A stretch of DNA of 64,000 nt from Octopus sinensis (taxonomy: Eukaryota): contig NC_043007.1 of NCBI RefSeq assembly GCF_006345805.1, positions 73,718,001 through 73,782,000 on the forward strand, in the 5' to 3' direction. Both the position numbers and the translations under genes were made by a program. Positions 1,758 through 33,200 of this stretch are shown here, one piece after another. The notes under the pieces were generated by a model. That model made no database searches, had not been told where the DNA came from, and saw only the letters and a program-made list of their open reading frames with translations. Position 1 is the first letter of the stretch. Each line of letters opens with the position of its first letter.

Positions 1758-2120
1758 TATCTGTTTCTTAATTTCTATTTTCTTTACTCCTTTCCGTCTT
1801 CGGTGAAGGCGCGTATCCTAGTAAACCCAGGTGTTGCACTCACGATAGCAAGATTGTAGTTTTGTTTCTCAGATCGGGTAGAACGTTGTGTTCTTAAGCA
1901 AAACACTTCATTTCATTGTACTCAGTCCACTCAAGCTGTATATGGATGACACTGCGACGGACTAGCCCTCCAATAAGGAGAAATGTTGGCATGCTCGCTT
2001 AGCCAGCAGGGTAGCATCATTCAAAAGCTAAAACAATGCAAAAGTGCATTGTGACAAGCGATGTATAACAGCATCTGATAGCCTAGTCAGTCACGTAATC
2101 ACGTGATATGTATAATATAT

Positions 2121-2530: not shown

Positions 2531-3789
2531 ATATTTAGTTGTATATACATTTAATGACAAAATTAATGAATCCAACTAAACAAGTGAAACTAAAGCTAAA
2601 CATACAGAATAACTTAAATTGTAATAAGTAATCCTGCGATGGACTGGTGTCCTATACATAAGGAACGTTGTGATCTTTGACGCTTATACGCCATGGAGTC
2701 CGAGTAGTTGGCCCTTATGATTCCTAGGACTCAAGACAACAATATCCAGAGGTCGATGATGATGGTGGTTTTCTGTTTTATTATGTTATTACTATTAATT
2801 ATTAGCAAGTATAGTTCTAAATTCTATAGTTTATCACTTAAGAACATGTTATTAGAGTTTATTTCAATAAAATGTTTTTTTAACGAAATAAAATTTTAAA
2901 AATCATTATCATGGGTGTGATTTCAATTAAAATTCCTTGCTGTTTTATACAAGGCAGCTTAAGTATTCATGTCGGAAGTATCGGAGAAGAGAGAATGTTA
3001 ATAACTACGGAGAAAATTACTGTAGGGTATTTGGTCTTCCGCTGACAACAATTGTTGACAGATAATTTTTGAATTAGTCATTACTGGAAGGTGCTCAGTT
3101 CGAATCAACAACATCTTAAAACTTCTTCCCCACCTCTCTCTCTCCCGCCTTTTTACTTTTGTCCTGGCCAAAGCAAGGATTTAAACTTCGGCATCTGTTC
3201 CCTAGTTTTACTTTTTACTCATCTGGCTATCTTTTCTTTCTTTCTTTCTTTCTCATCTCTTCTATTTTTTTTTCAGAAAGCTGCTCGTTATGCAGGCCAA
3301 GTTTAACACCACCGTTTAGTTTTTGGGTACGTTTAGTCGCAATGCAACCCGGTTTAAATATATATCACACCTCTCAATGCGCTATTTTCGGCGGCACATT
3401 TCCTTGGAAACTGTCTTTGCTTGTCAGGTGGAACAAAGTGCTCAGGCCGTTGTACCATATGGACAGGATTTTGAGAAGTTTTCTTGTGTTCATTAAATTT
3501 CATCGGGGCTGTATATGGGAAGTAACATAGGACTTAAGGAGATTCAATTAACCTGTCAGAACCCAACCGTTTTTATGCCCACTACACCTGACTACAAATG
3601 TGCTTCACACCTGATCCAGTTTGTATAGCTAAAAATATGGCCGAAACCATTCTTCTAGATATGTCTTTCCATGTCTCTCTAACAACGAAAGCATGTAAAA
3701 CTTAGTTTATCTTTTATGTGTTATAAATATCATTGTGATTTAACTGCTATGCAACTCCTTCACTTTGCTTGATAGCTAACATATTTGTA

Positions 3790-3920
3790 TTTAATTTGTC
3801 AAAATATTTTCTTCGCTTTGAGACCGCGACCTGTTCACTGATAAAACTTCGTGCTGCACGAAGTTTTGTCAGTTAACAGGTCGCGGTCTCAAAGCGACGG
3901 AAATATTTTGACAAATTAAA
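3790..3920. repeat. 131-bp palindrome (MITE-like)
   Basis: 65-bp arms centred on T3855 (...AAAACTTCGTGC-T-GCACGAAGTTTT...). Confidence 0.92.
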
Positions 3921-4169
3921 TTTATAAGTTGAAGTGAATCTAACGGTTTTTGTGTGTTTCTTAAATGGCTTATAAACATCTTCCACGCTGCAACTGTTTT
4001 CGTTCCAGCACACGATCTCAGATCAAGTCACTCGCTATGCAAGTACATCTCCTTAATAACATATTTGTGTTATTTTGATAGCATGGGAAACAAGAATATT
4101 GAGGTTTTGGAAATTTTATTGAGCTGTCATTCAATTAATTGTCAATAACCAGCTAGCGACAGGAGTCAG

Positions 4170-5200
4170 TATATTGTCTGATGCCCCAACTCGTAGTAAG
4201 TTTTTCCACTAATTTTTCTGTAAATCTTGAAAGACAATACATTGCTGACCTTAATGTCATCTCTACACCGATTGATACCTTATTTAAGTCGCCTTCATTT
4301 AACTCCCATGGGACTCTTCGAGGGATGTTCTGTTACTCGTACGCGTTCAGTATCTGTGTGGTTTTCTCATATACTTTCTCATAACTCAGGAGTAATCTAC
4401 AAACACGACTAACCCAGTGGCGTATGATGGTTGTTGTACTGGGTGTGCTGCTCCACCCAATGCCACCAAATTTCAAGCAGGGGTACAACAAAAGTTTTCC
4501 ATTAAGATTTGTGATTAAATTAATATTTGTAATGAATTTGCCATTTTCGATGTGTGTTCTGCGCACGCCTAGCACACCCGGAATATAAACCCTTGGACTA
4601 ACCCTATCGTAGCTATTGAGACCGAAAACTCCCTCCCTTTTCGCTCGTAGGCCTTATTCTTTTGTTTTCAGAAGTTGAGGGACAACTTGCAATTCGGAAT
4701 ATAACTCAGTAACGCACGAAATTTAACTGAATTATTGCAATTCTGCCCAAAAGACCACCATCGACAGACAAACTATATGGACTTGAAAGACTTATCTGTC
4801 GACGCTCTTTGATATTGGATCGCGAACATCTACAAATACTTCCCTGCGAATAATTAGGGATCTTATAGCTTCCCAGACGAACGCGACACAGATACCAACT
4901 TTGCAAGCAAAGATTGCTGTACTGAGGACAAATTACTCTGTGAGCTTTTACACAGTGATTACCTTCAAGCTTTCAAATGGTACTTGTAACTCCTGACACA
5001 AGCAATCAGCTGGTGTTAGACGTTGCTAATACCAAGATTCTAGAGACAGCTACATTCACTGTCGCTACAATCAAAGCTAAGTTCTAACATATTTATCAAA
5101 TATGCCAAGGTACAGCAACAAGTGGTTGACCTTGACTACCATTATTAACCAATTGTAGCATAGTTGTATACCACAATCTTCGCCTAGCAAGCGCCATATT
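4170..5200 (-). other. unclassified, probably retroelement-derived relic upstream of GTPBP2
   Basis: Minus frame 4575-4150 with one stop gives SSTPSTTT...RRVPWELNEGDL, loosely integrase C-terminus-like; PPT-like AAAAGGGAGGGAG near 4630. Confidence 0.25.
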
Positions 5201-6162
5201 TATGCTTCATACAACTCTCTGCGACCAGTGCTAAATAGAAAGTGGTCTAATGAAATCGAAACACGGTCGTTACTTCTATCAATTGGTTAAAAACCAAATC
5301 CACTCCCATATTACACCGAAGCATTTCAATTAATTTTATTGGAGTTACCTCCCTTGGTTTATTTATTTTCTTAAGTTTTTTTTAACAAACTTAGAATGAG
5401 TTTTTTTCCTATTAATTGCATAGATAATCTAAATAAATAAAGACTTTCAACTGCTTTATAACATATGTAAAACCCTACAGTCATTGTATTTAACATGTAA
5501 AAGTTCCTTTGACGTATTTTCCCCCGACCATATTGTCGATAACTTGTTATTGTAATAACCTTTATTGAAATCATCGTCTTTGAGGACTTCAATGTTCACA
5601 ATTCTTCTTGATACTTGCACTCATATACTGATGCTCCCGGAGCAAAAAACCAAATCTTGCGCAATAGTTCGCAATCCTTAGCTCTGCAACAATTGGTATT
5701 CCTCACCAACATACAGGCACCTCCCAACACTTATGTATTATGCAATCCAGCGACTATATAATTTAATATTTCATCATTGCACGATGTAAATGTTTTTATT
5801 AGTTTATTATCATCCAACCATGCAGAAGGAATTAGATATGACGCAATTTAATACGATATCATGCAATATAGTAGAGAAAGAGAGAAAGAATTGATGTTTA
5901 GAGGAGGTAAAGAGTTATATTCCTTGATTGTATTTGTTTGCCTACAGCAGCGCCACTGCGTTTCCCTCAACCACAATGGTCAGCTAAAATTATCATCGAA
6001 GACTCCTCCACCTCCACTTTTATTACAAGATATATATCACTTGTATCAGAAAGCGACGTACTTATGGATACAGTTCACCTGACTGCAACATCTATTCACC
6101 GTTTATACACGAATCAACGTCTTGATTACCGATTTATTAGGAGCAGGTAATCGACAGACACG

Positions 6163-6252
6163 ATGAAGAATCTGGAGGATTTCTTCGCATCGTCTTGTCA
6201 CCTAAGTGACAACAAAGCTCAAGTATCTTTAAATAGTTCCTTACCACCAGAG
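6163..6252 (+). CDS. GTPBP2: GTPBP2 coding exon 1 ([30 protein letters not shown])
   Basis: ATG 6163 with in-frame TAA upstream at 6148-6150; ends in conserved LPPE followed by donor GTAAAA; phase 0. Confidence 0.88.
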
Positions 6253-9200
6253 GTAAAATAAAACTAATGTTTTACTTTTATATTTCTCTCAACGTAGTAT
6301 TAAGATCGTTCTCTGAATTGTTAATGTTTAATAATTATCTGAGATGAGTTAATGTTAATAAGATTGTCATTTTGCGGAGTGAAAAATATCAAAATATTTA
6401 CATTTATCAGTATACATGTAAATATGTTATTGTTTAGTGCAGGTAGCCCCGATCGCACAGAGCTGTAAGAAAGACCAACAATCCGCGATCGTCTCATCCT
6501 TGATGTTTTGTTTTTTTTCGTATATTGTTAAATGTAAATATATTGTTATTTAGCTTTAGGGTAGCCCTGATCTAAATAAACTCAACAAGATCTACCCGTG
6601 ATCATTCCTTGTTTCAGGCCTTTTTCGTATATTGATAGATGTAAACATGTTATTTAGCTTCGGAATAATTCTGGTCTAGCCGATCTATGATAAAAACCAT
6701 TTAGCTGTAATCACTCTACCCGTGTCACTTTCTCCTTCCCGGAGTCCATATGAAATTAAAAGTGCTTACCTTGTCAAAAGTGCAGGTATTCTGCCCGGTG
6801 ATAAATGAAAGTGTGATTTGTATTTTACAAATGATTAACGGATCCTATATTTATAGATAATTGTTTAAATGCATCGTAGTGGATCTTCAATGAGTTTCAT
6901 ATCCACGGCGAAGTCGGGTGCGATATGCCATGAAGAAAAACTATTATTTAGAACACGTATTGTATTATTACGTTCATTTGTTTATCGCTTTAATTCTCTT
7001 TACGTTTGATACACTTTGTTAATAGCTAATCTTTGTTTACTTTAATTACTCTATATATTTAGATCCGATTGAAATACTCGGAATGACGAACTGGATACTT
7101 TAGAGTATCTAGTATTACACTCTACATTCGACTGTTTACGTTCATCACTGAAAACTTTCGTTCTTTAATTCGTATATTTGCGGAGGGGAAACGAAAGTAT
7201 AACAGAACAAACATTTTCAATAATAAAAGTGAATTACAGGAGAGTAGAGTACCGGCTTAGAAGAAACTATAAACGATCCAGGGATTTATAAATCATCCCA
7301 TTATTTGAGTCGGATCCTTCAAATGTTTCATCATTGCATAATAGCCAATCTTTGCTTACTTTAATTACCCTATATATTTAGATCCGATTGAAATAATCGG
7401 AACGACATACTAGATACTTTATAATATCTAGCATTTTGTAGTGTTGTATAATGTCTAATTGTATAATATAGTTAAATATTTTCACCTTTTGCTACACTTG
7501 AACTTTTAACAAGCTAAATACTTCTACTCCCTTGATGTCCCGGAAATTGAAAAAGAACCGGTCTTTCTTCTTTGTCCATCCATAAATACTTCATATAAAT
7601 GTCATTAATTTCCAAGAAAGTATACTGTGATTTGATGGAAAATTGGCTACTTTTTCTAGCAGATCGAAGCATCACGTAGTGGCTTGTCGCTGTGGCTCGC
7701 GATGTAAATATCAAATGTAGATGTAAATATTAAAACAAATTTTTATATCCCAAAATTAGGTTAATAGTCTTGTAGATTACAATATAATCAGATGAGGTGT
7801 CATAATAAATAGATCGTGTCTTTGTATATTGTCACTAATGTCAATGCAATTAAATGATATTATTATGCTGGATTTTCTGGGTTTAACTGATTAAGTAAGC
7901 CAAGACATCGACCCTCAGAATAGCTGAGACTTTCTCAGTTTATACGAGGTGGCGCTGAAAAGTTCCTGGCTTTTGGTAAACGAAAATACAGGAGGATCAA
8001 TTAATTATGATTTTGTTCAACATATTCCCCTCTCTAATTCAGACACTTATTGCAGCGGCCCTTCAGTTTATCCAAGCCCTGTAAAAGAACTCGGAAGGTC
8101 GGGCCTCCAATCAGGCCTTTCGCGACACTCTTAAAAAGCAAGGAATTTTGGTCAATATACAGTGTCACAAAAAACAACAAAAAAAACCCCAGGTGTAAAA
8201 AACGAATAAGAAAACAAAAATTTGTGCAAACGAGAGGACTTTCGGAAAATTTACAAGATCCGATTTTTCCCTCATAATTTCCAGGAAAATGTATTTTGAT
8301 GAAATTTTGTGGAAATGCTGTTCAAATGGCACAAATTGTGATTATAAAGAAATTTCCGGGGAAAATATTTTCCGAAGGGGTGGTGAGAGGAATTCGGAAA
8401 ATTTACACGATCCGTTTTTTTCCCCTCATAACTTTCAGGGAAATGGATATCTTTCAATGAAATTTTACAGAAGCACCTTTCAAACAGCATAGATTACGAT
8501 TATGAAGAAATCTGTGGGGAATATGTTCTCCGAAGAGGTGAGGAGAGGACAGTCGGAAAAGTCACACGATCCGTTTTTTTCCCCTCATAACTTTCAGGAT
8601 CTAGTTTAGCACTTAGTTACCAAAGTGAAAAAAGATCAGTTTACTAGGTGTAAAAAGACGTGTAGAAAACGAATATGAAAACAAAAATTTGTGCAAATGA
8701 ATGGGGTGGGTGGGGAGAGAACTTACGGAAAATTCACACGATCCAATTTTTTTCCCTCACAACTTTCAGGAAAATGGATATTTTTTAATGAAGTTTTTCA
8801 GAAAAAACTTTTCTCCCTATCCCTTCGGAAAACATTTTCCTCACAAATTTCTTTATCATCGTAATCTATGCTATTTGAAAGGTGTTTCTGTAAAATTTCA
8901 TTAAAAGCTAACCACTTTCCTGAAAGTTATGAGGGAAAAAATCAGATCGTGTGAACTTTTCGAAACACCTCTATCCTCACCCATCCCCGTTCGTTTTCAC
9001 AAATTTTTGTTTTCATATTCGCTTTCTCCACTTTTTCTTTTTTACACCTATTAGACTGTTTTTTTTTTTTTTTCTTGTCGTTTTGGTGACCAGGCACTAA
9101 ACTAGATCTTGAAAGTTATGAAGGTAAAAAACTGATCGTGTGACTTTTCCGAAATCTTCTCCCCACCTCTTCGGAAAGCATTTTACCCAGAAATTTTTTT

Positions 9201-12200
9201 ATAATCGTAATTTGTGCCGTTTGAACGGTATTTCTATAAAATTTCAGTAATATATATCCATTTTCCTGAAAACTTTCAGGAAAATGGATATATATTACTG
9301 AAATATATTGGATCTTGTAAATTTTCCAAAAGTCCTCGCCTCCCCCCCCCGTTCGTTTGCATTAACATCATGAAATATTACTCAATTTTTGTTTTAATAT
9401 CCATTTCCGACACATTTTTTTTTAACACCTAGTAGGCTTTTTTTTTTGTGATTAGGTTCATAAACTGTATATTGACCAGAATTTTTCAGCACCTCCTCGT
9501 ACGTGATCCCTTGACTTTCTAGACACAGCAACCTAGTTTACCTCAAACCACATATTACTTCTTAAAAACGGATATACTGGAGAAAGTGTTCCTGAGTGTA
9601 ATGAATGAAAAGATGGGATACATTTGGATGATATTTGTAGCAAGGTGAGCGGCCACACAGAAGCCTTTCCTCAGCTTGAAGTAAGCTGAGTTGTTCAACT
9701 CCAGAACAACTTTGATCAAACAGACCTATTTCTTCTAGTTGTAATCAGCCAATAGTTTTGTATACTAGGAAGTCTTTTGTTCAATATTTTCTTTATTTAA
9801 TAGGATAAAGGTATGATTTGAGGGTGATTTAGTTGCTACATTCTGCAAGTAAGCTTCCATGTGGAACTGCCAAACCAGCCAGCGTACATTAATAACATCT
9901 TACACAGGAAAAAATATTGCTAGGCAATGATTAAGGAGGCAGGAAAACAACCTTCTCTCTCTCCATCCTCTGTCTGTCTGTCTGTCTCTCACTGTCACAC
10001 TATTTATGCTTTGAGAGAGGTGGTGAATGTAAGGGTGACCTGCCTTCGTCTTTTGTTTATTTTCGTAAAGCTTCCTGTGATGTGTAGTATGAGTTACTAA
10101 GAAAAGGTATGATATGTTGTGAAAGGAAGGGCTAGCAGTGTTTCAGTTACATACATAGATAGACATACATAAGCTCCATTATAATAAGGATGTCAAAATT
10201 TGTCATCATTCATTAACCATTATTTTTGTAATAATTCTTTTTTTCTTTTGGCCATGTTTTAAAATAGTAGTTTTTGATGCAGAATTTGTGAAGTTTTACT
10301 CATCACAGTTTGTTAGAAATAACAACAGTATTCCCCTCAAATCACACCTTACCATCTTAGAAAGGGAAAGGGCAATATGGTTCTAGACAGTCATAAAAAT
10401 ACTAGATCATAAGTCTAATTGGTAAGGATTGACCTGGGGTCAAACAACAACCCACTTCAACATATTCAAAATTTCTCGCATTCTACATTAACACACAATG
10501 ACAAGTATTTCTTGTTGCAATAGTGAACTAATAATCAACTTTTATAATTCCTATTTTCTGCCCTTCTGCTCAGATTTAAATATAATTTATTTATAATTGT
10601 TACTGTTACCTAGTTTTATATGCCTTCCATTTTATTTTATGGCCTAGTATCTCATCTATAGTAAGACAGCTATCTGTATCCCTCTATCAAACTCTAACCT
10701 TTTGCCTGACACACAGCCACTTCTCTTGGGTCCACTCTCTCTCTCAGCTAAGAGGTCTTTTTCTTGCAAGTTACTTGGTGACTCTGCTGGCACTGCTACT
10801 ACATAAAAAGCACCTGTGCTGGTGCCATGTGAAAAGTACCTATATTGGTGCCACATAAGAAACACCCAGCACACCCTATAAAGCAGTTAGCATTAGGAAG
10901 GGCATCCAGCCATAGAAACCATACCAAAATAGACAATTGGAGTTTGTTGCAGCTCCCTGGTTGCCAGCTCCTGTTGAACCATCCAACCCATACCAGTATG
11001 GAAACTGGACATTAAATGTTAATGATGATGATGATGATGATAATGATGATGATAATGATAATGATGATGATGATGATGATAATGATGATGATAATGATGA
11101 TGATGATGATGGTGATTGAAAATATAATTGTTTTCTCCATTCTAGGTCGAAGAAGGCAATATCGAGTACAAGGTGAGTATGATGTACAATCAGTATAACT
11201 TGATATTATCTAGTATGAATGAGTTATGGATGAAATGGTTTAAATAAACCGTATTTGAACTTTGCAGCTTTGTTACAAAATTAAGTATAAACATCTGTAA
11301 TTGTCCTCTAAATATTTAAGGCATTCACACTAAAGCAACACCTATTTTCTCGCAAGGTGGATTTTTCTTTGTATTATATTGGAAAAAGGATGGATGTCTA
11401 CTATTGAGTTGAGATCTTTGTAATAGCAGGTATCATGAGTTTCCTTTGATACTTACCAATGGGGTGGGTGGGGGTGGAATACTGGATTTCAACAAATACT
11501 GTGTTCTTTGCTGGTACTGTAGATATATTGTCAGTCATGTTTTATACAAAAACATTTAATTTGATGTTGTTTATGTCATAAGAATTTAGACATGAAGTAA
11601 ATTGTTTTAATGATGGAACACAAAGCAGGTGAAGCTATAAATGAAATCATGTAAATATTGCTTTGGTCCAATGCTAGAACATCTGTCATGTTTGCAGAAG
11701 TTGTGGGCTCAAGTTCCATGGGAAACTTTCAACTTTTCCAAGCAAGGGATTTTTTTAACTCAGTATTTTCATGCTGTTCTTTATAGCTTTATCTACTTCG
11801 AGTTCCTTCATCAAAAATGATTTGTAATGATGGAAGTATTTAATGTAATTTGAATGTTTTCATTCCTGGATGATGTAAAGGCATGTATATTTTTCTAGCT
11901 GTCATTGACTTGCAGACAGTTCAAGCAGACCATTAATGGTATCATTCTCACTAAAGCGGCGAGCTGGCAGAAACGATATCACGCCGGGCGAAATGCTCAG
12001 TGGTATTTCATCTGCCGCTACATTCTGAGTTCAAATTCCGCTGAGGTCGACTTTGCCTTTCATCCTTTTGGGGGTCGATTAAATAAGTACCAGTTACGCA
12101 CTGAGGTCGATATAATCGACTTAATCCGTTTGTCTGTCCTTGTTTGTCCCCTCTGTGTTTAGCCCCTTGTGGGTAGTAAAGAAATAAGTATCACTCTCAC

Positions 12201-12565: not shown

Positions 12566-15500
12566 ATATGTTCGTGTGTCTGCGTTTGTCCCCCCAACAT
12601 CGCTTGACAATCGATGCTGGTGTGTTTACGTCCCCGTAACTTAGCAGTTCGGCAAAAGAGACTGATAGAATAAGTACTAGGCTTACAAAGAATAAGTCCT
12701 GGGGTCGATTTGCTCGATTAAAGGCGGTGCTCCAGCATGGCCACAGTCACATGACTGAAACAAGTAAAAAGTAAAAAAAGTAAAAGTAAAGTTATATTTT
12801 TTATTTTGGTCACGCTATAATTTCCAAACCACATTTATTCAAAATATTTTTTACTGCTTTCCTTTATCAATTGAAAATGTTTTATTTTATTGTATTCTGC
12901 AGTTGAAATTAGTTGATCCATCACCTTCAAGGTTTGAACACCTGGTGACGCAAATGAAATGGCGGCTTCAAGAAGGAGAAGGAGAAGCTATATACGAGAT
13001 AGGTGTAGAAGACAGTGGAATTTTGGCTGGTTTACCAAAATTAGAACTTGAAGCTTCTCTGAATACTTTGAGGAAGATGGCCAAAAAGTAAGTTAGTTTT
13101 TTGTTTTTTTTTCAAGCTGTGCCATCTTCCAAACAGTTTACCGAATCAAACTATGTCAAAATCTCATAAACTTATTCTCTTTTAGTAACAAAATCTGTTG
13201 CTATATTTTCTCCTGCATCATTAATTTTAAATGTACACATTGTGTAACCAGCCCACCTATGCGTACCTTTCCTTTATTGGACACTAAATTCTGCTTGCGA
13301 AGACCTGTCGAGGCAAGTGAAATCAAAATTGAAATCAAATTCGATGACTGGCATCCATGCTAATGGAGTGCTAGTGGCCAGCAGAGCTGAGCACACCATT
13401 TGTCCTGAGATGTATGGTCCATTGCCCTCCCATCACTCTATCTTCTGTTGCTTTACCCTCATTTTTTCTTTCTTTTTCTCTAAGATGTATATACTCTCTA
13501 GACATAAAATAAATTCTGGTTAATGATGAATCTATTATTATCCATTTAAAACAGCAGTGTACTGTATTAATATTTTTCAAAGTAATTTTCCTGAAACTCT
13601 CCTTTAAATGGAATAATTTTTCTCTAAATTCTAAAACTATACAGCTGCTGATATTTTCTCTTATTGTATCAAAATATTGTAAAACTATTTCTTTAGAAAT
13701 TATGTCTTTTAATGTCTTTTGTTAGACTTGGTGCTACTATTACCATCTTGAGAGAACGAGCTGTTGATACAGATTCCAGAAAAGCTCTACAGATTCTTGT
13801 ACGAAAGGTTCCTGATGATCAACAGGTATGAGACAAAAATTTCTAACAAAGATGTGTTTTTTTAAAGTTCTATTTGTTAATGCTGTCATCATCATCGTTT
13901 AGCGTCTGCTTTCCATGCTAGCATGGGTTGGATGATTTTGACTGAGAGCTGGTGAACCAGATGGCTGCACCAGGCTCCAATCTTGATCTGGCAGAGTTTC
14001 TACAGCTGGATGCCCTTCCTAACGCCAACCACTCCGAGAGCGTATTGGGTGCTTTTTACGTGCCACTGGCACAGGGGCCAGTCAGGCGGTACTGGCAATG
14101 ACCTCGCTCAAATCTTTTTACATGTGCTACCGGCACAGGTGCCAGTGAAGTGACGTTGGTAACGATCACGCTCGAATGGTGCCATGGGTAAATTTGATAG
14201 CCATGAGCTAATCTAGATTAGTGGTTCTCAGTCGTAGTCCATATGGCCCCTGAGGCTACATATAAGATTTTTTGGGGTCCACAATAGTATTTTAAGGGCC
14301 CCTGAAAAAATTTTGCTTTAGATGTATGTATTGGTATGTATTGCAAAAAACAGTTAAGTTTCTTTCTCAAATGTTTTACATAGTTCAACCTACACAAGTT
14401 AATTCATGAATAACAAAAGGGGAACCTTGAAAGAAGTTTCTATGAAACTAGTTTTTAAACATTGAATGGCTAGGGGGGTCCATCCGAATAAAATAGTTAT
14501 CAAATGGGTCGATAGATAAAATAATGATTGAGAAAACCTGGTCTAGATCCACTATGATGTACAGTCTTTGTTGTGATGTGGTGGCTTGTGACCCTGAGAG
14601 CTATGCCAGCAGAGAGCAAGCACCTGGTAGGGCCTCCCATGCTGGATAGGTGAAAGAATAGAGGCCAGACTAATATGGATCAACTCTTCCCAGAGGTAAA
14701 AGTGGGTTTCCTTAGGGCCAACATCATCATTGTCATCATCATCATCATCATCATTGTCATCACCATCATCATCATTGTCATCATCACCATTATCATTATC
14801 ATCATTTAACGTCTGTTTTCATGCTGGCATGGGTTGGACAGTTTGATCAGAGCAGGTAACTAGAAAAAGCATATTTACAGAAGTGTCGATGATAATTCAA
14901 AACCAACACAAACCTGGGAGCGGAAAAGACAGCCCATACTTGAGAATAGTGGGGAAAAAAATGTTGTTGACGGCCTATGCTCCAAAGGGAGTGACTAGCT
15001 TAAGCAAAAGTAAGTTTGTCTCGTTGCTTTGTGCTATTTAGTTCAGTGTGTTTGTGTTCAATTATCAAAATACTACAGCTGATTTAAGGCAGCCAGCTGG
15101 CAGAGTTATTACCATGCTTAGCAGCATTTCTTTTGACTTTATGTTCTGAGTTCAAATACTGCCAGGGTCAACTTTGCCTTTCATCCTTTCAGGGTCAATA
15201 AAATAGGTACCAGCTGAACACTGGAGTTGATGAATTTGACTTACACCCTCCTCGAAATTGCTGGCCTTGTGCCAAAATTTGAAACCCATATGTTGATTCA
15301 TTTGATTATGTTATCTTCACTTATAAAATTGTGTTTGTGTTGAATTAGATTAGTGTTGTTATTTATGATGCTTAGTCATCATCAATCTGGCTTCTGATAA
15401 AAAGTATTGCTGCAGTGATTCAGTGACTACCACAACTTTTTGGATATCAAGAACTATATCGTTCTTCCATTTTTAATATGTTTGTGTATAATAGGAAGCA

Positions 15501-16860
15501 GATTTAGCTGCTATTTCCAGTATATTGAGAGACTCAGTAGAAGTTGTCTCATTATTTTTATAATAGATTATAACACCATTATCATCATTACCATTTAACA
15601 ATTGTCTTCCAAGTTGGATAGGAACTGGTGAACCAAAGGCTGTACCTGGCTCCATTTTCTGTTTTGACATGATTTCTACAGCTCGATGCCCTTCCTAATG
15701 CCAACCACTTTACAGTACATTGAGCACTTTTTATGTGGCACCAACATTAGTGAGGTCATCAAGTAACATTCAAGACAAAACCTAGCCTCAACTGAAAGTG
15801 GGGAATAGTAGTATTGAAGGAAATGACTTTGTGCCAGGTGATGAGAGTCTATGTGATTGGGAAGCAAGCTTTTTACCACACAGCCATGCCTGTGCCTTTA
15901 ATGTTAAGAATATTAATATATTTTTTATTGTGCAGTTCATTGACTTACGCCTCGCAGTTCTTGGTAATGTTGATGCTGGCAAAAGTACATTACTTGGAGT
16001 CCTAACTCAAGGAGAACTCGACAATGGTCAAGGACGTGCTCGATTAAATTTATTCAGGCATTTACATGAAATTCAATCTGGTCGCACCTCAAGCATCAGT
16101 CATGATATCCTGGGATTCAATAATATGGGCCAGGTAATTATAATTACTTTTTTTAATTAATCAAATTATCCAAATATTGTTTGTATCAACTTAAATAGCC
16201 TCTAATAAATTATTATTATGAGTAGTTATTATTACTTTTAATTGATCAAATTATTCAAATAAATATTGATTTGTGTCAGCTTAAACAGCCTCTCATAAAA
16301 CTCCTGTAATCTTTTATCTGTTTTTGTCAGTCAATGGCTCTTGTATTTCTTAGATCTTGGAAAAAGGCATGATGCCATTCCATGGGCTGAACCTTCATTT
16401 CTGGATCATAAATATACAGCTATATTTCATCTCCTGTTACAAAATTGAACCCCCCCCCCGAAAAACAGGTCTTCATTTCCTTCAAAAGTTTTCAGATCAG
16501 AGGAATTTCCACCTTTCTTTTCTTTAACCCTTTAGCATTTAAATCAGCCATATCTGTTCCAATTATTCTGCCTGATTTAAGTTCAGCTTGACTAGATCTG
16601 GCTTCATCCACCTACCCTACTATGTCTTTCTAAAAATAAATTATCACGCTGTCAGAATATTGAAGATATGCAATAGCACTTGATTAAATTCAAAACTTTG
16701 TAATTCCTATTAGCAAATGAAACATTTGTAATGGTGAATAAATAATACCAGAAAATTTCAAATTTTCTGTTTTATCTATATATATATAGGTCAACATTTT
16801 TTGTAAGTGCCAATGCACGAAACTCTCAGGCCTTGAATTATTCTGTTACTTCTACTAGTA

Positions 16861-16930
<70 letters not shown>

Positions 16931-17711
16931 TTTATATATATATAAAATTTCCTGATCTTTACCTTTTGACCGACAGATTTAAAAAATAATTTTTTGTAAC
17001 TAAACACTTTCAAACTTCGGACACTGGTAGAATGTGTCATATAAAACATCTTTTACTCTTAGCATTTTTGAAAAAAACTTATATTTCTTTTCTCATGTTC
17101 AGTGTTAATCTGCTTTTACATATGATACATTTTTGGCTTTTAGTCAAAAATAATTCATGTAATGAAGAAATGAAGGAAGCTGGTGCATGTCTTTTGCAGG
17201 TTGTTAATTACAAAGAAGCCAGAACAGTTGAAGAAATCTGTGAAAACTCAACAAAACTAATTACTCTGATTGATCTTGCTGGACACCAAAAATATTTGAA
17301 GACAACTATTTTTGGTTTAACTGGTTATTGTCCTGACTGTGCAATGCTTGTGGTCAGTGCAAATACTGGAATGGGTAAGTTAGTTTTTTTGTTTACATTT
17401 TTTCTTAACTGGACTGTGACATTGTGTGCAGGGGGCTGATGATTTGGCACAACTGGCAGGACATTAAATTTGGGGACTGTATTTTTGGCCCCCTGGCAGC
17501 AAACATGTACCCCCCACACACAACATATGCATATAAGTATACACGTTACAGCCAGGGTGAGTGTGTGGGAGAGAAATAGAGAGAGACACACACACATTAT
17601 ACATACATATAAACATAACGATATGCTCACACATAGAAAGAGAAAGAGAGAGAGATAATGAGAAAAGAAGAGATGTAATGAGAGAGATAGTGAGAAAGAA
17701 TGAGAGAAAAT

Positions 17712-17753
<42 letters not shown>

Positions 17754-20700
17754 TGTTAAAATGTTTGATGTGAAATAAATCAGCATTGAATTAGCAATGC
17801 CCTAATCAGTGGTGCTAAAATGGCAGTACCAATATATTTTGTACTCTTTCTGAATTACTTTGTGTTTTTTTTTTTTTTTTTCATGTGTCCAGTCAATTTT
17901 TATCCTTAGAAATTTATTCTTCAAGGTCTATGTAATAAAGTAAATTCCAATGAAGTAGTTTGTCTCATCTCACAGATCTAATACTAACCTCTGTTGATAT
18001 CTTGCTGCATTCAGTGAAAAAGTCTTCCCTCTCAGTTTCAGGTTTTGTTGACAGTTCTGACAGCTCAGTGTCACATTCCATAAATGGATCTCATTCTTAG
18101 CATATTTCAACTTCCTGGCCAGCTGGAATTCAGCAATCATGTGCATCCTAATGGTTGGGTATTCAGTCATCCATGGTGTTCAGTTTAACCCTTTAGCATT
18201 CAAATTACTCTGTCAAATATAAATGCCTATTTATTCACATTCCCCTGAATTAATCATGCATTATCTCATAGCTTTGAAATTTTGAGGATGTGGCTGCGTC
18301 TGGTTTTAGACTGACATTGTAGGGTTGGTATGAGAGGCTAGATTGGCCAGTTTTAACTTAAAACAGAATATTTGGGCCTGTTATGGTTGGTTTAAATGTT
18401 AAAGGGTTAACTTACTAGTCTCAAGCTTTGTGGCACAAACATTTGATTTCTTAACTAAGTCAACAGCTTCTCAAGAAACACATCTTCATCACAAAACTGT
18501 TTCATCAAAAGGCAATTGAAATACTGGACAATATAAAGATTTATTTTTTAAAGTATTGATTCTCCAGCAGGAATTGTATTTGAGGCCACATGAGACTAAA
18601 ACCAGCATTCCTTCAGCTGCAAGAAAAATTCATAGAATATCATAATTAAAAATAGTAAACCATCCACCCTAACAATACCATAGAACATATTCTTGGGATT
18701 GTTTTGTAGGCTTCATGTTAGGATCTATTGATATAAATATTGTACAAGAATGGATGGAGTATAGTGATGATGGTGATGATAATGCTGATGATTATGGTGT
18801 CAGTCACGATAGTAATAATAATGATGATGGTGATGATGATGATGACGGTGAAGATGGTGATATGATGATATTGATGTGTTTTGCTATATTTTCTTATAAT
18901 TTCAGCTGGTACAACCAAAGAACATTTGGGTTTTGCCCGTGCCCTTGACGTACCAGTTTTTGTAGTGGTCAGTAAGATTGATATGTGTCCTGAATCTCTT
19001 ATTGAAAAAACCATTCAACAACTGGAAAAAATCCTCAAATCTCCCAGCTGCAACAAAGTACCATTCCGAGTGAGCAGTGAAGATGATGCCATTACTGCTG
19101 CAACTAATTTTGATTCTCAAAGGTAGGTACCATGACGCATACTGGTTTCAAATTTTGGCACAAGGCTAGCAATTTCGAGGGAGGGAGTTAAGTTAAATAC
19201 ATCGACCCCAATATTCAACTGGTACTTATTTTATTGACTCTGAAAGGATGAAAGGCAAAGTCGATCTTGGCAGAATTTGAACCCAGAATGTAAAGTCTGA
19301 TGAAATTCTGCTAAGCATTTTACTTAGCATGCTAACAATTCTGCCAGCTTGCCCCCTTAGGTACCATAACACATATTAATAAACCCACAGTACTGCTTTA
19401 ATCCTTTAGCATTCAGATTACTCTATCAAATGTAAAGCTTATTTGTTCACATATTTTGAATTAAGCATGCATTACTTTATAGCTTCGAAATTTCAATGAT
19501 ATTATTGTTTATTTTCAGAATGACATTGTAGGGTAAGTGTGAGAGCTCAGATCTGGTTAGTTTGAGCATAAAATAGGTAGAATATTTCGACTGGGCGTGG
19601 CTGGTTTAAATACTAAAGGGTTAATGATATCTCTCACACCTCACTCCTCTCTCAAGTACTTCTACTTTGACTAACCTGTGTGATATTCAGTAAAAATAAT
19701 GTGTTTGTGTGAATCAGGATGCATTAACAATGAAAGGTCAATGATGTGAAAAGAAATGAGGCAAGACTGGTATGTTCTACCTGTATAAAGGACATAGCGC
19801 GACAAATGAGGCTCAAAGTGGAACTGAGTATTTTAAGACATTAAAAACAAAACAAAAAAAATCTGGCACTCCATCAGTTACAATGATGAGTGTTCCAGTT
19901 TATCTGATCAACAGAACAGCTTACTCATGAAATTAATGTGCAAATGGCTGAGCAGTCATCAGGCATGTCTAACCTTAATATAGTTCTCAGGGAGATTCAG
20001 TGTGACATAGAATGCGACAAGACTGGTCCTTTGAAATACAGTTGCTACTCATTTTTGCCAGCTGAGTGGACTGAAGCTATGTGAAGTAAAGTGTCTTGCT
20101 CCAGGACATGACATGCTGCCAGGAATTCACAACCGTATGATTGAGAGCCAAATACCCAGTGACTAAGCCATGTACCTTCAATTAAAAGACATTAGCCAAA
20201 TAGTGGAGGAGTGATTTCTGCATTAGTCATATACCGGTCATTCTTACCCTTTTATAACTCAACACTTCCTTTCATCAAATGGCACTTTTCAAGCTCTTCA
20301 TTGGAACATTTTTTTAAATACAGAACTAAAAAAAAAACATTATTTTAACCAAACAGAAGATAATTTAGTGTAGTGGTTTATTATCCATGTTTAATTTGGA
20401 AGCACTAAAACAAAATATTTATATCTTTTGCTGTAATTTTGATAAATATATTCATTTAACAATTTTCATTTGCTAATTTAATCATTGCTATTTTAATCAT
20501 TGCTGTTTTAATAATTTGCTAATTTAGATATAAAAGAAGCATTTATGAACATTAGAGCTTCATGCATCATCAGTTTGGTTTCTGCTCTCTGATAATACAA
20601 TGTCATACCATTGTCTTAGCAAATATCTTGTGCCTTTTTGTACTAACAACAACTATTACCAATAAATGCTAAGTTTATCAATGAACTTCTTTGGTATAAA

Positions 20701-23700
20701 AACTTAAAATATCTGAGGAGATAATCTTGCTTTCTTCAGAACCTGATCGCTTGTATTATATTTTTGAGGTCAAACAAATTCTTATTTCATCACTACTATA
20801 TAACTCATTTCCTTCTAATGATTTTTGCCTTAACTTTTTCCGCTGGAAAAAGAAGAATTAAAAAATTTGGTTCGGCAAATGTTGGTCAAATAATTCACCA
20901 TTTCTTGATTATTTTTTATTTCCAGCATAATACCGATATTTTCAGTTTCCAGTGTCACTGGCAAACACTTAGATCTACTCACCACATTTTTGAATGTTGT
21001 TCCACCACTACGAAATTTGAAAGAAAGAGAGAAGTGTGTTCAAGATATAACCGAATTTCAGGTAAATATTACTGCACATAAAGATTCATGAATGTTATTA
21101 TTAAATAATTAGCATTTATTTTATTTATATATATATATATATATGTATATATATCTAAATATCTTTTATTTATATATATACCTATCTGTCAGTCTGCCTG
21201 TCTCTCTGTCTTCCTACCAACCTACCCACCTGCCTGCTTGCCTGCCTGTCTGTTTGTCTGTCAGTCTTTCTGTCCATCTTGTGTTTGCTTATATATATCT
21301 ATCAGACGAAAGTGCTAATAAAGGATTATCCAAAATTCTGACTGCCTCCTTCTTCTTAATATATATACATATATGTATGTCTAAGGTGAGCTGGCAGGAT
21401 CATTAGCATGCCGAACAAAGTGCTAGGCAGCATTCTGTTCATCTTTACATTCAGTGGGGTCAATGTAATAGATTAATTACCCCCCCCCAAATTTCAGGCC
21501 TTGTGCCTATAGTAGAAAGAATTATAAATAAAGCAGAATTGTTTGCACAATGGACAAAAAGCTTAGAGCCATTTCTTCTGGCTTTTTACATTCTGAGTTC
21601 AGATCCTGCTGAGGTCAACTTTACCTTTCAACCTATTGGGCTGAAATGCATAAAAGATAAAAGAAAAGTTGCAAGCGGGGTTAAACTGCTGCCATGCCTG
21701 GCAAACAAGTGTCCAATACAGATCTGATTGTCTCGGAGCTAGGGTAGCAGGAGTTATCTCCCATTTGCAATTATTATCGTTTGCGAGAAGTGCACTTATA
21801 TATATATATTAGTAGTATTATAACCTGATTTCATTCGAGAGTATAGTGGGTGCTGTTACGTGTCACTGGCACGAGGGCCAGTCAGATGGTACTGGCAACG
21901 GTCACGTTCAAATGGTGTTTTTATGTACCACCTGCACAGGAGCCAGTCCAGTGGCACTGGCAACGGCCTCACTTGAATGTTTTTTCACATGCCACCGGCA
22001 CAAGTGCCAGTAAGGCAATGCTGGTAATGATCATGCTTGAATGGTGCTTTGTACGTGCAACCAGCACGGAAGCCAGTCAGCTGCTCTGGCAATGATGGTG
22101 CTCTTAGCACTCCACTAGCATAGATGCCAGTCATCAAATTTGATTTTGATTTCGATTGCCTCAACAGGTCTTTGCAAGCAGAGTTTAGTGTCCAATGAAG
22201 GAACGTTACACATAAGTGGACTGGTTACATCCCTGGCATAGGCCACAGGGTTATGGTCTCACTTGGCTTTCCAGGTCTTCTCCTGCACAGCATATTTCCA
22301 AAGGTCTCGGTTACTAGTGTGTATGTATATATATATATATATATAGGGGTTGGATAAAATAATGGAAATGCCTTAAAATTGGGCCCGTCGGACTCTTACA
22401 CGAATTGTTAGACAGGATCACAAAAGTACAGCTCCCAAAATTACTGCAGAGCTTAATGACCACCTTGAGAACCCAGTTTCCACAAAAACTTTTCGCCAGG
22501 AGCTGCACAAAGCCAGATTTCATGGGAGAGCTGCAATCAGAAAACCACTTCTTTGTTATTTTCTCGGATGAGTCATCCTTTACCTCATTTCCGACCACTG
22601 ACCAAATATACATGTGAAGTCAGCCAAAAGAAGCATTTGACCCAGACTGCCTTTTTCCAACAAGGAGGAGGATCTGTGATGATCTGAGGGGCTGTATCTT
22701 GGAAATCTGCCAGTCCAGTGGTATCCCTTCATGGAAGAATTAATAGTCAAGACTAATTAAGCATTTTATCTGATCAAATTCATCCTGTGGTTGCAGAACT
22801 GTTTCTGGAGGGAAATGCAATCTTTCAGGATGATAATGCACCAATTCACACAGCTAAAGTAGTTACTGAATGGCCCGAGGAACATTCTAGTGAAGTTGAA
22901 CATCTTATCTGGCCACCACAGTCCCCAGATCTCAATACTATTGAACATTTATGGTGCATTTTAGAAAATCAAGTAAGGAGTTGTATTCCTCCACTATCAT
23001 CACTACAAGAACTGGAGACTGTTTTAGCTGAAGAATGGACAAAAATTCCTTTAGAAACAATTCAAACTTTGTACAAGTCCATACCTCGTTGAATTCAAGC
23101 TGTAATTACTGCCAAAGATGATCCTACCCCATATTAAAATAAATTTGTTTGAAATTTTAAGGTGTTTCCATTATTTTGTTCAACCCCTATATATATATAT
23201 ATATATATATACACATACACACTAGTGACCGAGACCTTTGGAAATATGCTGTGCATGAGAAGATCCGGGAAGCCAAAATTTCAGGATTGCAGGTCCGGGT
23301 TCAGGCTGGAATGTTTTTAATTTATTCACAGAATTAATCTTTATATTATAAAAATTGTTATTGTACAAAAGGATTTGTCACAAAAAGTCATATAAAAAAA
23401 AATTACCAAAAACAAATACAGTAATGAAAACTTGGGAATCCAAAATTTCTGGATTGTGGGTCCAGATTTGGTCCGGAATGTTTTTAATTTACTATTACTT
23501 CCACTGCCACCATCAACATCAACTCTCCCTAAATTTCTGTCTCTCTTTCTCTCTTTTTCTTTCTTTCTCTCTGTCTGTCTTCGCCACCTCCCTCACTGTC
23601 TCTATGCCTACTATTACTCTCACCCTATCATGTGGAATAGTAGGAGTGTCACTGAATAGTGAGAGAGGGGGTCTAAGTGTGGCACACTGACACACAGAAA

Positions 23701-27264: not shown

Positions 27265-30201
27265 AAATGAGTGTTTGTTTACCTTCCGTTTTAGGTGTCC
27301 AGGTAAAAAAAAAAGCGCATTGAGTTATGTCCCTTGAATTAGTTCGTCTATAGCAGTGAATCTCGACCATTTTTTTGCCTACAGACCCTCTTGATTCCTG
27401 TTTTACTCTATTAGCCCCTCCCTCCCACTACAAAAGAAAAATCCTATTATATTTTTATAATTAGATATTGTTGGGAAGTGTATAAAATAAGTTGTTAAAT
27501 ATTTTGTTTTGCAGATATATAACCAATTTATTGCTCATAAATTTTAACAACAAAATTTCATATGGATCCCCAAGGGTCAGATGAATATCGGTTGAGAACC
27601 ACTGGTTTATATCTATGCGTGACCACATTAATATGCATGTATATATGTGTCTACATGCATATTTATACATGCACACACACACGTGTCTGTGAATGTACAT
27701 CATCATCATCGTTTAGCATCCGCTTTACATGCTAGCATGGGTTGGACGGTTCAACTGGGGTCTGGAAAGCCAGAAGGCTGCACCAGGCCCAGTCTGATCT
27801 GGCAATGTTTCTACGGCTGGATGCCCTTCCTAACGCCAACCACTCCGTGAGTGTAGTGGGTGCTTTTTACGTGCTACCGGCACAGGTGCCAGATGAGACT
27901 GGCAAACGGCCATGATCGGATGGTGCTTTTTACGTGCCACTGGCATGGGGGCCAGGCGAAGGTGGCAACGGCCACAATCAGATGGTGCTTTTTACGTGCC
28001 ACCGGCACGAGCCAGTCGGGGTGGTGCTGGCAACGGCCATGTTCGGATCATGCATGAATAATATAAAGACTTGAAGTCACATTGCAATATTTCACAGATT
28101 GCACTTTTCTTTTTAATATATATCATCCCTGTACCCATAGCAAACAAGAAATATATATATATAGTAATGCCCAAGTGACATACACTGATCATGATATGGG
28201 GTTTATCCATAATTTATATTGGTGCTACTATGGCATGTAATCTACAACTTTAAGGGTGATTACTTTAGATTTTTAGTTTATGTTGCAAAAGTTGCAGCTG
28301 CCAAACTTGTGTGATGTATGCACTTATTCTAATTATTATATTGTTTATTCTTGGTTTCTTATTGTTATTTACTAAGACGTAAATGAAACAAGGTTTTATT
28401 ATTAAAATAGTAAGAATTTTGAAAAAATACTGTGTCAATGTATTCTCTTTTACTCATTTACTTGTTTCAGTCATTTGACTGCAGCCATGCTGGAGCACTG
28501 CTTTTAGTCAAGTAGATCGACCCCAGGACTTATTCTTTGTAAGCCTAGTACTTTATTCTATCGGTCTCTTTTGCCGAACTGCTAAGTTACGGGGATGTAA
28601 ACACACCAGCATCGGTTGTCAAGCGATGTTGGGGGGACAAACACAGACACACAAACACACATACACACATATATATATATATACATATACATATATACGA
28701 TGGGCTTCTTTCAGTTTCCGTCTACCAAATCCACTCACAAGGCTTTGGTCGGCCCGAGGCTATAGTAGAAGACACTTGCCCAAGATGCCATGCAGTGGGA
28801 CTGAACCTGGAACCATGTGGTTGGTAAGCAAGCTACTTACCACACAGCCACTCCCGCACCTATATGCATAACTTTGATAGGTTTCAGCCAGTATATGCCC
28901 AGGCTATGTTTAACTTAATAGCACCACTTGGTACAAAAGAATTTATTGTAAAAAATCTGTAGCTAACATGCTAAGTCTTTTTAGAAATTGAAAAGTAAAC
29001 TAAAATGTAACCTAAAGTAATCACCCTTTAGGTTGTAGACCATACACTTTTATTTTTGAGTCAATGTTTGAAGTTGTCTTCAGCCATGTACTTGTGGTAT
29101 TTTTAAAAATACAACTTAGAAAACTACAACTGACTGAATTCATTAGGTATTCACTGACTGACCAATTGTCTCATCTAGATTCGTTGCAAGTAGGTACCAT
29201 GGAGCGGAACGGTACACTGCTTTATGCAAGCACTGGGTGCTGTTCTACTCATGAATGACATGCAGTTTGTTAACCCTTTAGCATTTAACCCTTTTGATAT
29301 CAACCCGGCTAAAACTGCCCTGGCTCTGTAGTACAAATGTCTTGTTTTCATAAGTTTTGAATTAAAATCTTCCACCAAACCTTAGTCACAATTTATATTC
29401 CTAACACTAGCTGAATGATAACTAAGTTATTTTACTAAATTCTTTGTTATATTTAAAGTAATTGAAAGAAACACAGAGCATCTCAAAATAAATACAGTAA
29501 CAAAAGGGTTAAACCAGTCATATCTGGCCAAAATATTCTGTCTGTTTTATGCTCAAACTGGCCAGATCCATCATCTTACACCTACCCTACAATGTCATTC
29601 TAAAAATAAACAATCTCATCATCAAAGCTTCAAAGCCCCAAGATAATGAATAATTAATTCAAAACAATAATTAAGTATTAGATTTGACAGAGTACTCTGG
29701 ATGCTAAAGGGTTAAATGACTTTACTCACTTCACAGGATTCCCCAAGAGTGATTATGAGAGTAGTTTGGAGATAGCTGAATGTGAAAAAATGATTAATTT
29801 GTCTTAGATTCACTATCATAAAATAAATGGTGCTAATATAACCTAATAAATAAAACCACTAGCATCTTATATTGAGAGTTGTTTTATTGTTTTTTAAAGT
29901 GGCTCTATCCGGGAAGGTGACTCTCTCATGCTTGGACCTATGTCGGATGGAGAATTTCATCATGTTACTGTGAAAACAGTTCATCGAAATCGTCTTCCTT
30001 GTCGCCTAATTCAAGCTGGACAGTCAGCTACTGTGGCTCTGTATAATATTGAACGTGAATCTCTTCGCAAGGTTTGTAACATATTGCGTCCCATTCTCAA
30101 TTTGTTTTGTATTTTTAATTCTATCTCTCTTCTCTCTCTCTGTCCTCTATGCTTTCTTCTTCACTCACTCCTCTTCTTTTTTACTTTATACATACATACA
30201 T

Positions 30202-30252: not shown

Positions 30253-33200
30253 TTTGAAAAGGATCTGAGTTCTTTTTTGATCTGTTAAAAGAAAAATAAA
30301 TATTTATGGTATGCATTGTTCAAATAACTCTGATCCTGTTCAGATCTAAGAGCTCTAATCCACTGCTGAATTCTAGATTGAAATTTTCAGTGGTTGTTCA
30401 AGCAAACATTAGTTATGCAGGTAACTTGCCTGAACAAATGTCTGGGTTTGATGTTAGCCTATAAATCCTCAAGAATTGTGTCAATGCTGTGTCATTGACC
30501 AGCTCATTTCTTGATTTCTTTAATGCTCTTTTAAATGTATCCATGAACCGTTCTTCTTGCCTGTTTGATCTTGGGAAATATAGCGGAATAGAGACGTGTT
30601 CAATTGCAAGAATTTTAAAATTCATATGCTGTAAATTGTGTACCATTATCGGATAGTATGGTGTCTGGGACACCATATCCTGCAAAGTATTTGTGAAGAA
30701 ATTCTATTGTTACCGTGGAGGTTGGTTTCCTACATCTACATATTTCCGGCCACTTAGTATAACTATCTACTACTATCTACAACTTCTTATAAGTGATTTC
30801 ATTCTCAAAATTCTTGGGCGACCAATATGAAATTCTTTTAATAAATGCTTTTGTTGTGCGGCTGGCACTATGACTCTTTGTGCATTTATCAACTCATTGT
30901 CACACAATGAAGAATGGTTCACATTTGTGTTGCGCATATTTTTATCTTCTTTGACCTTCAGTGTTTCTTTCATTTTTATAAAAAGTTTACTGGTCCAGCA
31001 AAATTTATATGAAGCGTGGTCCTTGGGCTGTCAGTTTTAGGCCATGGTTGAAATTTTACCAGTGGTGACTTGGGTGCAAGGGCACAATCTCTGCAGGATT
31101 TCACTGACTCTTCATTGTCAAGGTCCATTGTTGGCCAATATACATAACTTCTCATAAGTGATTTCATTCTCAAAATTCTTGGGCGACCAATATGAAATTC
31201 TTTTAATAAATGCTTTTGTTGTGCGGCTGGCACTATGACTCTTTGTGCATTTATCAACACATTGTCACACAATGAAAAATGGTTCACATTTGTGTTGCGC
31301 ATATTTTTATCTTCTTTGGCCTTCAGTGTTTCTTTCATTTTTATAATGAGTTTATCATTCTCCAACTTTGATTTTATGTCTGGCAGCATAACCGACAGTT
31401 CCTGAATACGTGACACAAAACATTTTAAATTTCATTTTGACATTCCTCTGCCACTGCCTGTAGAGTCAAATTCTGGTCCTGTTTTAATTTTGTCAATATC
31501 TGGGCACATATCTCTGATTTTTGCTTGCAGTTAACCCTTGCAGAAAAATTAGACATTTGAACATATCCAGGGTTAATTTTTTTAGTTTGAATTTTTTGCT
31601 TTCTCGATTGATGACTCTGGCAAAGGTGATGAAATCTTCATCATCTTTTTTTTTGCTAAATTCAAACACTCTCAGTGAGTATTGAACAAGGGACTTCACT
31701 TCTTTCACTGATAATTTTCAATAACAATTTGTTTCATTGAAACAAATTTTACATTTTTTTTTTTGGCAGCATGTAGTTACAGTATTTTTTGTGTTCCGCA
31801 GGGGATAATGTTCTTAAAAGTATACATTCTTCTGGGTTATAACTAAATTCTGCAATTGTGTTTGTTACGCCATATGGCGAGAACGAACCTGAAGTATTTT
31901 CAAACTTCAACATTAATTCCAGCAACTGTTGATATTGCTGTAGTTATTGTTGTAATTGCTGCTGTAACTGTTGTTGCTATTGCTGTTGCAACTGCATCAC
32001 AGAGGCTAATAAGTTTTCCATGTTAACTAATTTTTCTTTGATTTTGTATCAAAAGAAAATGTTAACATCTTACATAAGCTTTGAATAAACTTGTCACCAC
32101 TTTCATAAGTGGATATCCTTGTTGCCAATGTTATATCCTTCTGCAGGTTTGATACACAGATTTCATGAAGCAGGGATAGGCACAACTATCTTCACATGAG
32201 ACTCCTATAAATACAAACTCTCAATGATCTCAATGACTTCCACAAACTCTCAATGATTCTTACGACTTCCTCTCATCTCTACCAATATGCTACTTTTGGC
32301 TAGTCCATTCTTCCAATCCCACAGGGGTGTCAATGACTCTCGCCACAACACTTTATCTCCTCATAACTTAGTAACCTTAAAATGGTTTTATTTACATACA
32401 GAAACTTAGAACATTTTATATTATTATTTTAAGTCTTAAGGTGCATATTAACATTCATATGTATGAAAGAATGTGCAGACATGGCTGTGTGGTTGACAAG
32501 TTTGCTTTGCAACCATGTGGTTGCCCAAGGTGAGGTGTCTTAAGGTGGAAAGCTGGCAGAATCATTAGCATGCCAGGCAAAATTCTTAGTGATATTTCAC
32601 CTGTCTTTACATTCTGAGTTCAAATTCTGCCAAGGTAAACTTTGCCTTCCATTCTTTCAGGGTTGATGCATTAAATACCAATTGAGTACTGGGGTCAATG
32701 TAATTGACTTAACTTCTTCCCAAAATTGCTGGCCTTTACCTCTTTTACCTCTTTTACTTGTTTCAGTCATTTGACTGCAGCCATGCTGGAGCACCACCAT
32801 TTTTTTTAATCGAGCAACTCGACCCTGGAACTTATTCTTTGTAAACCCAGTACTTATTCTATCGGTCTCTTTTGCCGAACCGCTAAGTGACGGGGACATA
32901 AACACACCAGCATCGGTTGTCAAGCAATGCTAGGGGGACAAACACAGACACACAAACATACACGCACACACATATATATATATACATATATACGATGGGC
33001 TTCTTTCAGTTTCTGTCTACCAAATCCTCTCACAAGGCTTTGGTCGGCCCGAAGCTATAGTAGAAGACACTTGCCCAAGGTGCCACGCAGTGGGACTGAA
33101 CCCGGAACCATGTGGTTGGTAAACAAGCTACTTACCACACAACTACTCCTGTGCCTTGTGCCAAAATTTGAAACCATTATTACTTCAAGTCTTAAGGCAG

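Follow-up and report, generated by a model that had tools for sequence, protein, structure and literature searches.

Among named Tc1-like transposons with a DD36E catalytic triad, the Incomer family (DD36E/IC) consists of ~1.2-kb elements that encode a transposase of ~346 aa, carry terminal inverted repeats (TIRs) of 22-32 bp and are flanked by a TA duplication (Sang et al., 2019; PMC6875036). The only other described DD36E group, TLEWI, comprises Tc1-like elements of bivalves that contain introns, lack TIRs and have a YQDNDSKH motif at the second catalytic Asp; they are low-copy, possibly domesticated, and reportedly missing from the genomes and transcriptomes of cephalopods (bioRxiv 10.1101/656579). 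Tc1-Mariner elements as such are abundant in cephalopods, with 73 entries in the Octopus vulgaris table of recently active repeats, and ZB, another Tc1 family, was already reported in Euprymna scolopes; the cephalopod repeat literature treats Tc1-Mariner at the superfamily level only. In the literature that we searched on DD36E elements and molluscs and on cephalopod repeats, no catalogued cephalopod DD36E element was found.

We analyzed a 64-kb stretch of the Octopus sinensis genome, hereafter the window, in which a preliminary description had noted an Incomer-like DD36E transposon of the Tc1 type. Very probably, this locus is a dead, internally deleted DD36E Tc1/mariner copy that belongs to a distinct lineage sibling to Incomer and has decayed neutrally in octopus.

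Structure and decay of the octopus copy

The element occupies positions 22344-23189 of the window (~845 bp), has TA at both ends, and is bounded by TIRs of 35-37 nt, so that its ends read TA-GGGGTTGG...CCAACCCC-TA. The left TIR (TAGGGGTTGGATAAAATAATGGAAATGCCTTAAAATT, 22344-22380, plus strand) agrees with the reverse-complemented right end in 33 of 37 positions, and the right TIR (23153-23189, minus strand) terminates in ...CCCCTA, the same end that is followed by (TA)n in L001, one of three related DNA copies used for comparison (L001, L002, and L003, from samples ERZ8879894, DRR201531, and ERZ25070786, respectively). The left TIR is homologous to those of L002 and L003, which read CAGGGGTTGGACAAAATAATG..., and its first two bases are ambiguous in the (TA)n context, representing either the CA terminus of the relatives or the TA target-site duplication; likewise, the TA at the two element ends is indistinguishable from the surrounding (TA)n. 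The L003 and L002 elements end in ...CCCTG and ...CCCCTG, respectively, each followed by TA. All three octopus-lineage copy ends seen, namely window positions 22344-22349 and 23184-23189 and the 3' end of L001, have the form TAGGGG.../...CCCCTA, in contrast to the CAGGGG and CAGGGA termini of L002 and L003; either the terminal base changed from C to T in this subfamily, or the flanking (TA)n makes the terminus ambiguous.

Between the TIRs, three reading frames together spell the conceptual translation of a transposase. A remnant of the second helix-turn-helix (HTH) of the DNA-binding domain, delimited by alignment to L001 and L002, lies at 22386-22553 on the plus strand (Pfam HTH_Tnp_Tc3_2, E=4.2e-10). 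It is followed on the same strand by the first part of the DDE domain (22554-22658, frame 22345+3n) and by the remainder of this domain with the C-terminus (22659-23137, frame 22346+3n). Pfam models DDE_3 (E=1.3e-16) and HTH_Tnp_Tc3_2 (E=4e-10) both match the conceptual translation. With HTH and DDE domains, TIRs, a TA target, and all three catalytic residues identifiable, we assign the element by its sequence features to the Tc1/mariner superfamily, in line with the Tc1-type designation given earlier. Neither blastn nor tblastn detected a second copy in the 64-kb window, and an Rfam scan of the window returned no matches.

The catalytic codons and the spacing named in the preliminary description were confirmed in the sequence. 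The first Asp is GAT 22567-22569 (the D of FSDES, frame 22345+3n), the second is GAT 22832-22834 (the D before N in FQDDNAPIH, frame 22346+3n), and the Glu is GAA 22943-22945 (the E of NTIEHLW, frame 22346+3n). The latter two residues lie in one unbroken ORF (22787-23092) and span 38 residues inclusively, leaving 36 between them; in the reference alignment, Sleeping Beauty counts as DD34E in this same register. With the conceptual translation as query (stops written as X), a protein search retrieved 674 relatives (best E=1e-120). Given these homologues, the Pfam E-values, and the presence of L001, an independent contig (ENA ERZ8879894) with 89.6% DNA identity to the window copy over ~850 bp, the match from D to E is not due to chance.

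An alternative that had been raised together with the initial observation is that the element is a canonical DD34E Tc1 transposon whose extra 6 nt between the second D and the E are private to this copy. We looked for such an insertion and consider it excluded, since the D-E codon distance is equal in the window copy and in L001, L002, and L003, with no indel between these codons in any of the four DNA copies, and since all 62 of the closest relatives with a readable motif, among the 120 of 674 matches listed, are DD36E. The more distant listed relatives are DD34E or DD35E. Judged from these alignments, the 36-residue spacing is a trait of the lineage.

The window sequence and its relatives P0001-P0027 are hereafter called clade W. 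Outside the window/L001 pair, the nearest relatives share 76-78% identity with the window copy in the DDE domain, and at the DNA level its identity is 80% to L003 and 77% to L002. Contigs of ~1.27 kb hold intact relatives that encode 343 aa and have ~30-nt TIRs of the form CAGGGG... and TA flanks. In L003 (positions 1-12046 of ENA ERZ25070786 ctg130681l) the sequence shared with the window is limited to the Tc1 element; there, the clade-W copy is 5'-truncated, lies beside an inverted 66-bp fragment of itself (7958-8023), and is surrounded by RVT_1, DDE_1, and piggyBac-like ORFs.

The uninterrupted reading frames of the intact relatives also bear on TLEWI, which shares with the octopus element a mollusc host and the DD36E spacing. 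Membership in this group is nevertheless very improbable: TLEWI, which we compared by its published description, has intron-split ORFs, no TIRs, and the YQDNDSKH motif, and was reported absent from cephalopods (bioRxiv 10.1101/656579), whereas the octopus element has TIRs, a different motif at the second Asp, and relatives with continuous 343-aa ORFs.

Alignment to L001 and L002 points to a parent element of ~1.27 kb with a 343-aa transposase and defines the lesions of the window copy. Directly after the left TIR (about 22380/22381), ~340 bp are deleted, comprising the 5' UTR and codons 1 to ~66; a further 75 bp are missing at 22553/22554, and an 8-bp deletion at 22658/22659 shifts the reading frame. 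Lesions including this frameshift account for the location of the first D in another frame than the second D and the E. Four premature stops are present, namely an in-frame TGA at 22615-22617 and a stop at 22685-22687 (both Trp in relatives), a stop at 22754-22756 (Tyr in relatives), and a stop at 23090-23092 (Arg in relatives), in addition to the original stop TAA 23135-23137. The earlier characterization of the copy as a non-autonomous one that contains stops and has lost N-terminal and internal parts thus holds throughout, and from its sequence we conclude that the copy cannot encode a transposase.

Between the window copy and L001, dS is 0.12 and dN/dS is 0.84, a value that reflects neutral decay of two copies from one subfamily. 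Comparisons of the window copy with L002 and L003 give dS of 0.7-1.1 and dN/dS of 0.11-0.24, which indicates purifying selection on the transposase along the lineages that separate the window/L001 subfamily from the other two. The parent transposase was a 343-aa protein with two HTH motifs, a DDE domain, and a DD36E triad. As known for the Tc1/mariner family, it would have bound the ~30-35-nt TIRs, excised the element, and reinserted it at a TA that became duplicated. The present copy inserted into a (TA)n microsatellite in the middle of an ~85-bp palindrome of the octopus genome. Its subsequent decay was neutral and left it with two large deletions, a frameshift, and four stops. Since the TIRs are both preserved (33/37 matching), an intact relative, should the genome contain one, could presumably still move the copy in trans, which is the most that can be expected of it; for the octopus genome, the copy is inert repeat sequence.

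Relationship to Incomer and other Tc1 families

We placed the element using neighbor-joining (NJ) trees with 200 bootstraps. The DDE-domain tree, a type of phylogeny with Incomer and DD34E references already proposed in the preliminary description, used reference domains published with the Incomer paper (PMC6875036, Additional file 4), which include Incomer sequences of bats, frogs, fish, hagfish, insects, and spiders. The full-length tree was built from relatives obtained in an exhaustive representative search with the intact P0002, together with two full-length Incomer representatives. Clade W is monophyletic in both trees (97% for DDE domains, 100% for full-length proteins), and the window sequence groups with P0001 at 100% in the full-length tree. 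In the DDE-domain tree, the published Incomer references form a clade of their own at 96%, which excludes clade W, and all DD36E sequences cluster together at 60%. In the full-length tree, clade W is joined by P0062, P0467, and the two Incomer representatives as its sister group, with the joint node at 34%.

Three observations that do not depend on the trees identify Incomer as the nearest named relative of clade W, a conclusion supported by the sequence comparisons as a whole. The two residues by which both groups exceed the DD34E spacing occupy the same alignment columns and are accompanied by a common W.EEH..E[FV] (EEHxxE) motif, whereas two DD35E groups carry their extra residue at another position. 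Among non-self families, the clade-W sequences score best on the Incomer HMM and the Incomer sequences score best on the clade-W HMM, for every sequence tested. The L002 TIR matches that of the Incomer element of Nephila clavipes at 21 of 29 ungapped positions, a level reached by none of 100000 shuffles, and the inner TIR sequence AATAATGTGA.C.ACC is common to both; by comparison, only 13 of 29 positions agree between the TIRs of spider and insect Incomer. Similar N-terminal motifs, DLSDF.RG.IVGAR and (S/C)GRK, are also found in both groups. In overall format the two are alike as well, each having a single transposase of ~343-346 aa in an element of ~1.2-1.3 kb with ~30-nt TIRs and a TA target; the intact relatives (343 aa, ~1.27 kb, ~30-nt TIRs) have the dimensions described for Incomer, while the window copy itself measures 845 bp.

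These observations have to be weighed against the possibility that the 36-residue spacing arose separately in clade W and in Incomer, and that clade W is one of many Tc1 lineages derived from DD34E ancestors, with no special tie to Incomer. Such convergence is in keeping with the weak to moderate NJ bootstrap values for the union of clade W and Incomer (60% for DDE domains, 34% for full-length proteins) and with the homoplastic behavior of the spacing itself: the Sleeping Beauty-like P0507 is also DD36E via an unrelated insertion, so the spacing alone is not diagnostic of a family, and DD35E occurs elsewhere in two groups. The authors of the TLEWI preprint likewise stated that spacer size cannot accurately distinguish families (bioRxiv 10.1101/656579). 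It is opposed by the insertion in identical columns with the conserved EEHxxE[FV] motif, by the reciprocally best HMM scores, by a TIR that is closer to the spider Incomer than the spider and insect Incomer TIRs are to each other, and by the intermediate DD36E lineages P0062, P0466, and P0467 in the same region of the tree. We therefore regard convergence as unlikely, albeit a serious competitor, and propose that the two-residue insertion was most likely inherited by clade W from an ancestor shared with Incomer.

Descent from a shared ancestor still leaves the question of whether the octopus element falls within the published Incomer family, in one of its clusters A-D. Its DD36E spacing, the ~1.2-1.3-kb size, short TIRs, and TA target of its group, and the rank of Incomer as the nearest named family would all suit such a membership, which is nonetheless improbable on four grounds. 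Incomer references are monophyletic at 96% without clade W; the DDE-domain identity between clade W and Incomer is 36-53%, compared with 52-59% between the Incomer clusters checked; the TIR termini of clade W are CAGGG or TAGGG, as opposed to CACAG, CACTC, or CACTG in Incomer, with CAGGG found nowhere in the Incomer supplement tables, even though the inner TIR agrees at 21 of 29 positions with the spider Incomer; and Fundulus heteroclitus carries both a published 346-aa Incomer element and a separate 343-aa clade-W element. Other differences are the transposase length, 343 aa in clade W and 346 aa in Incomer, and TVKHGGGS in clade W in place of the TVQAGGGS of Incomer. At full length, P0002 is 38-39% identical to the two Incomer representatives, which look degenerate, a value no higher than the 40-43% that it shares with some DD34E proteins. 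Based on these comparisons, clade W is a well-populated, apparently unnamed sister group of Incomer, not a member of it. The initial label of an Incomer-like element is accordingly apt as to the nearest named family, as indicated by the insertion columns, HMM scores, TIR, and NJ trees, and needs to be amended in that the element lies outside the published Incomer clade.

With the DD34E/Tc1 transposons, such as Sleeping Beauty, Passport, Frog Prince, and Quetzal, clade W shares the architecture of the superfamily and, presumably, a cut-and-paste mechanism. It differs from them in that its second D and its E are two residues farther apart and in that the DDE-domain identity is only 31-43%; moreover, Sleeping Beauty and ZB have long TIRs of the IR/DR type, in contrast to the short TIRs of clade W.

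P0062, P0466, and P0467, which branch in the same part of the tree, are further DD36E lineages that belong neither to clade W nor to the published Incomer. Their extra residues lie in the same region, and GRPR is replaced in them by (S/C)GRK. Taken together, the DD36E sequences look like a radiation of several lineages. The value of these results is taxonomic, in that the group is broader than the published Incomer and includes clade W and at least three further lineages (P0062, P0466, and P0467). Since many intact 343-aa transposases with matching TIRs were found, active elements may exist in clade W, and these could be tested as gene-transfer tools, as for other Tc1 families.

Hosts of clade W and horizontal transfer

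By their protein names, members of clade W occur in the teleosts Sphaeramia orbicularis, Xiphophorus maculatus, and Fundulus heteroclitus, and, among invertebrates, in the spider Trichonephila clavipes, the talitrid amphipod Trinorchestia longiramus, and the nematode Strongyloides venezuelensis. In this patchy distribution across phyla clade W resembles Incomer. Across 103 residues, the amphipod protein shares 94% identity with that of the cardinalfish, a cross-phylum similarity that is hard to reconcile with vertical descent; on this sequence evidence, we conclude that horizontal transfer occurs within clade W, adding one more case of Tc1 transfer between phyla. Over 101 residues, the octopus copy and the amphipod protein share 68% identity. 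Horizontal transfer of clade W into the octopus lineage is plausible by analogy and, for some point in the past, likely on general considerations.

A mollusc copy had been expected to extend the host range of the family. The published list of Incomer hosts contains no mollusc (PMC6875036), and a cephalopod is hereby added to the hosts of the DD36E group; however, clade W already spans teleosts, an amphipod, a spider, and a nematode, and the extension amounts to one more phylum for a clade that is already promiscuous. A more far-reaching reading of the data would be that clade W constitutes an unnamed, family-level DD36E sibling of Incomer that moved horizontally between aquatic and other animals, including teleosts, a talitrid amphipod, spiders, a nematode, and octopus, with the window copy as the first Incomer-type DD36E element in Mollusca and Cephalopoda, acquired by horizontal transfer. 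We advance this reading tentatively, giving it slightly less than an even chance.

Insertion site and neighborhood

The element sits at the (TA)n center of a near-perfect palindrome of ~85 bp. The left arm of this host palindrome (about 22263-22345) consists of unique sequence followed by (TG/TA)n and is 93% complementary to 23194-23276; the (TA)n and the right arm, which pairs with the left one as an inverted repeat, occupy 23190-23276. When the flanks are joined, the resulting empty site is predicted to fold into an ~85-bp hairpin (-77 kcal/mol). Tc1-type transposases prefer TA and ATATATAT targets, and Sleeping Beauty prefers TA sites within AT repeats. Insertion into an AT repeat would fit this target preference.

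We also considered whether the outer 83-nt inverted repeat could be a long TIR of the element itself, and rejected this assignment. The L001 flank differs beyond the (TA)n, the arm sequence occurs nowhere else in the 64-kb window, and the upstream repeat shows homology only as far as 22261. Instead, the palindrome may represent a microsatellite locus prone to hairpin formation, or else a small element of the foldback or MITE-like type. The upstream repeat, at 21836-22261, is a SINE-like dispersed repeat with internal tandem units of ~63 nt, and this copy abuts the palindrome. At least six partial copies are present in the window, including those at 13243-13373 (minus strand), 14035-14182, 27846-28044, 40699-40829, and 42426-42719.

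Upstream of the element, exons of a GTPBP2-like GTPase were detected on the plus strand at 12954-13088, 13724-13834, 15930-16139, 17197-17379, and 18893-19111, with fish GTP-binding protein 2 as the best named match (84%). The element lies ~3.2 kb downstream of the last exon detected in this 12954-19111 span. For two ORFs of the window, no exact protein match is on record. A 146-aa ORF on the minus strand (30976-31416) resembles the zinc-finger region of a retrotransposon integrase and represents a separate, decayed element. Further downstream, an LTR retrotransposon on the plus strand (48811-52460) contains a 907-aa Gag-protease-RT-RNaseH ORF (48811 to about 51534) and a 228-aa integrase ORF. 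Two Octopus vulgaris proteins match its Gag-Pol ORF at 99% identity, compared with 55% for the next best hit, which assigns the window to O. vulgaris or a very close relative; by reason of this identity the retrotransposon is probably young.
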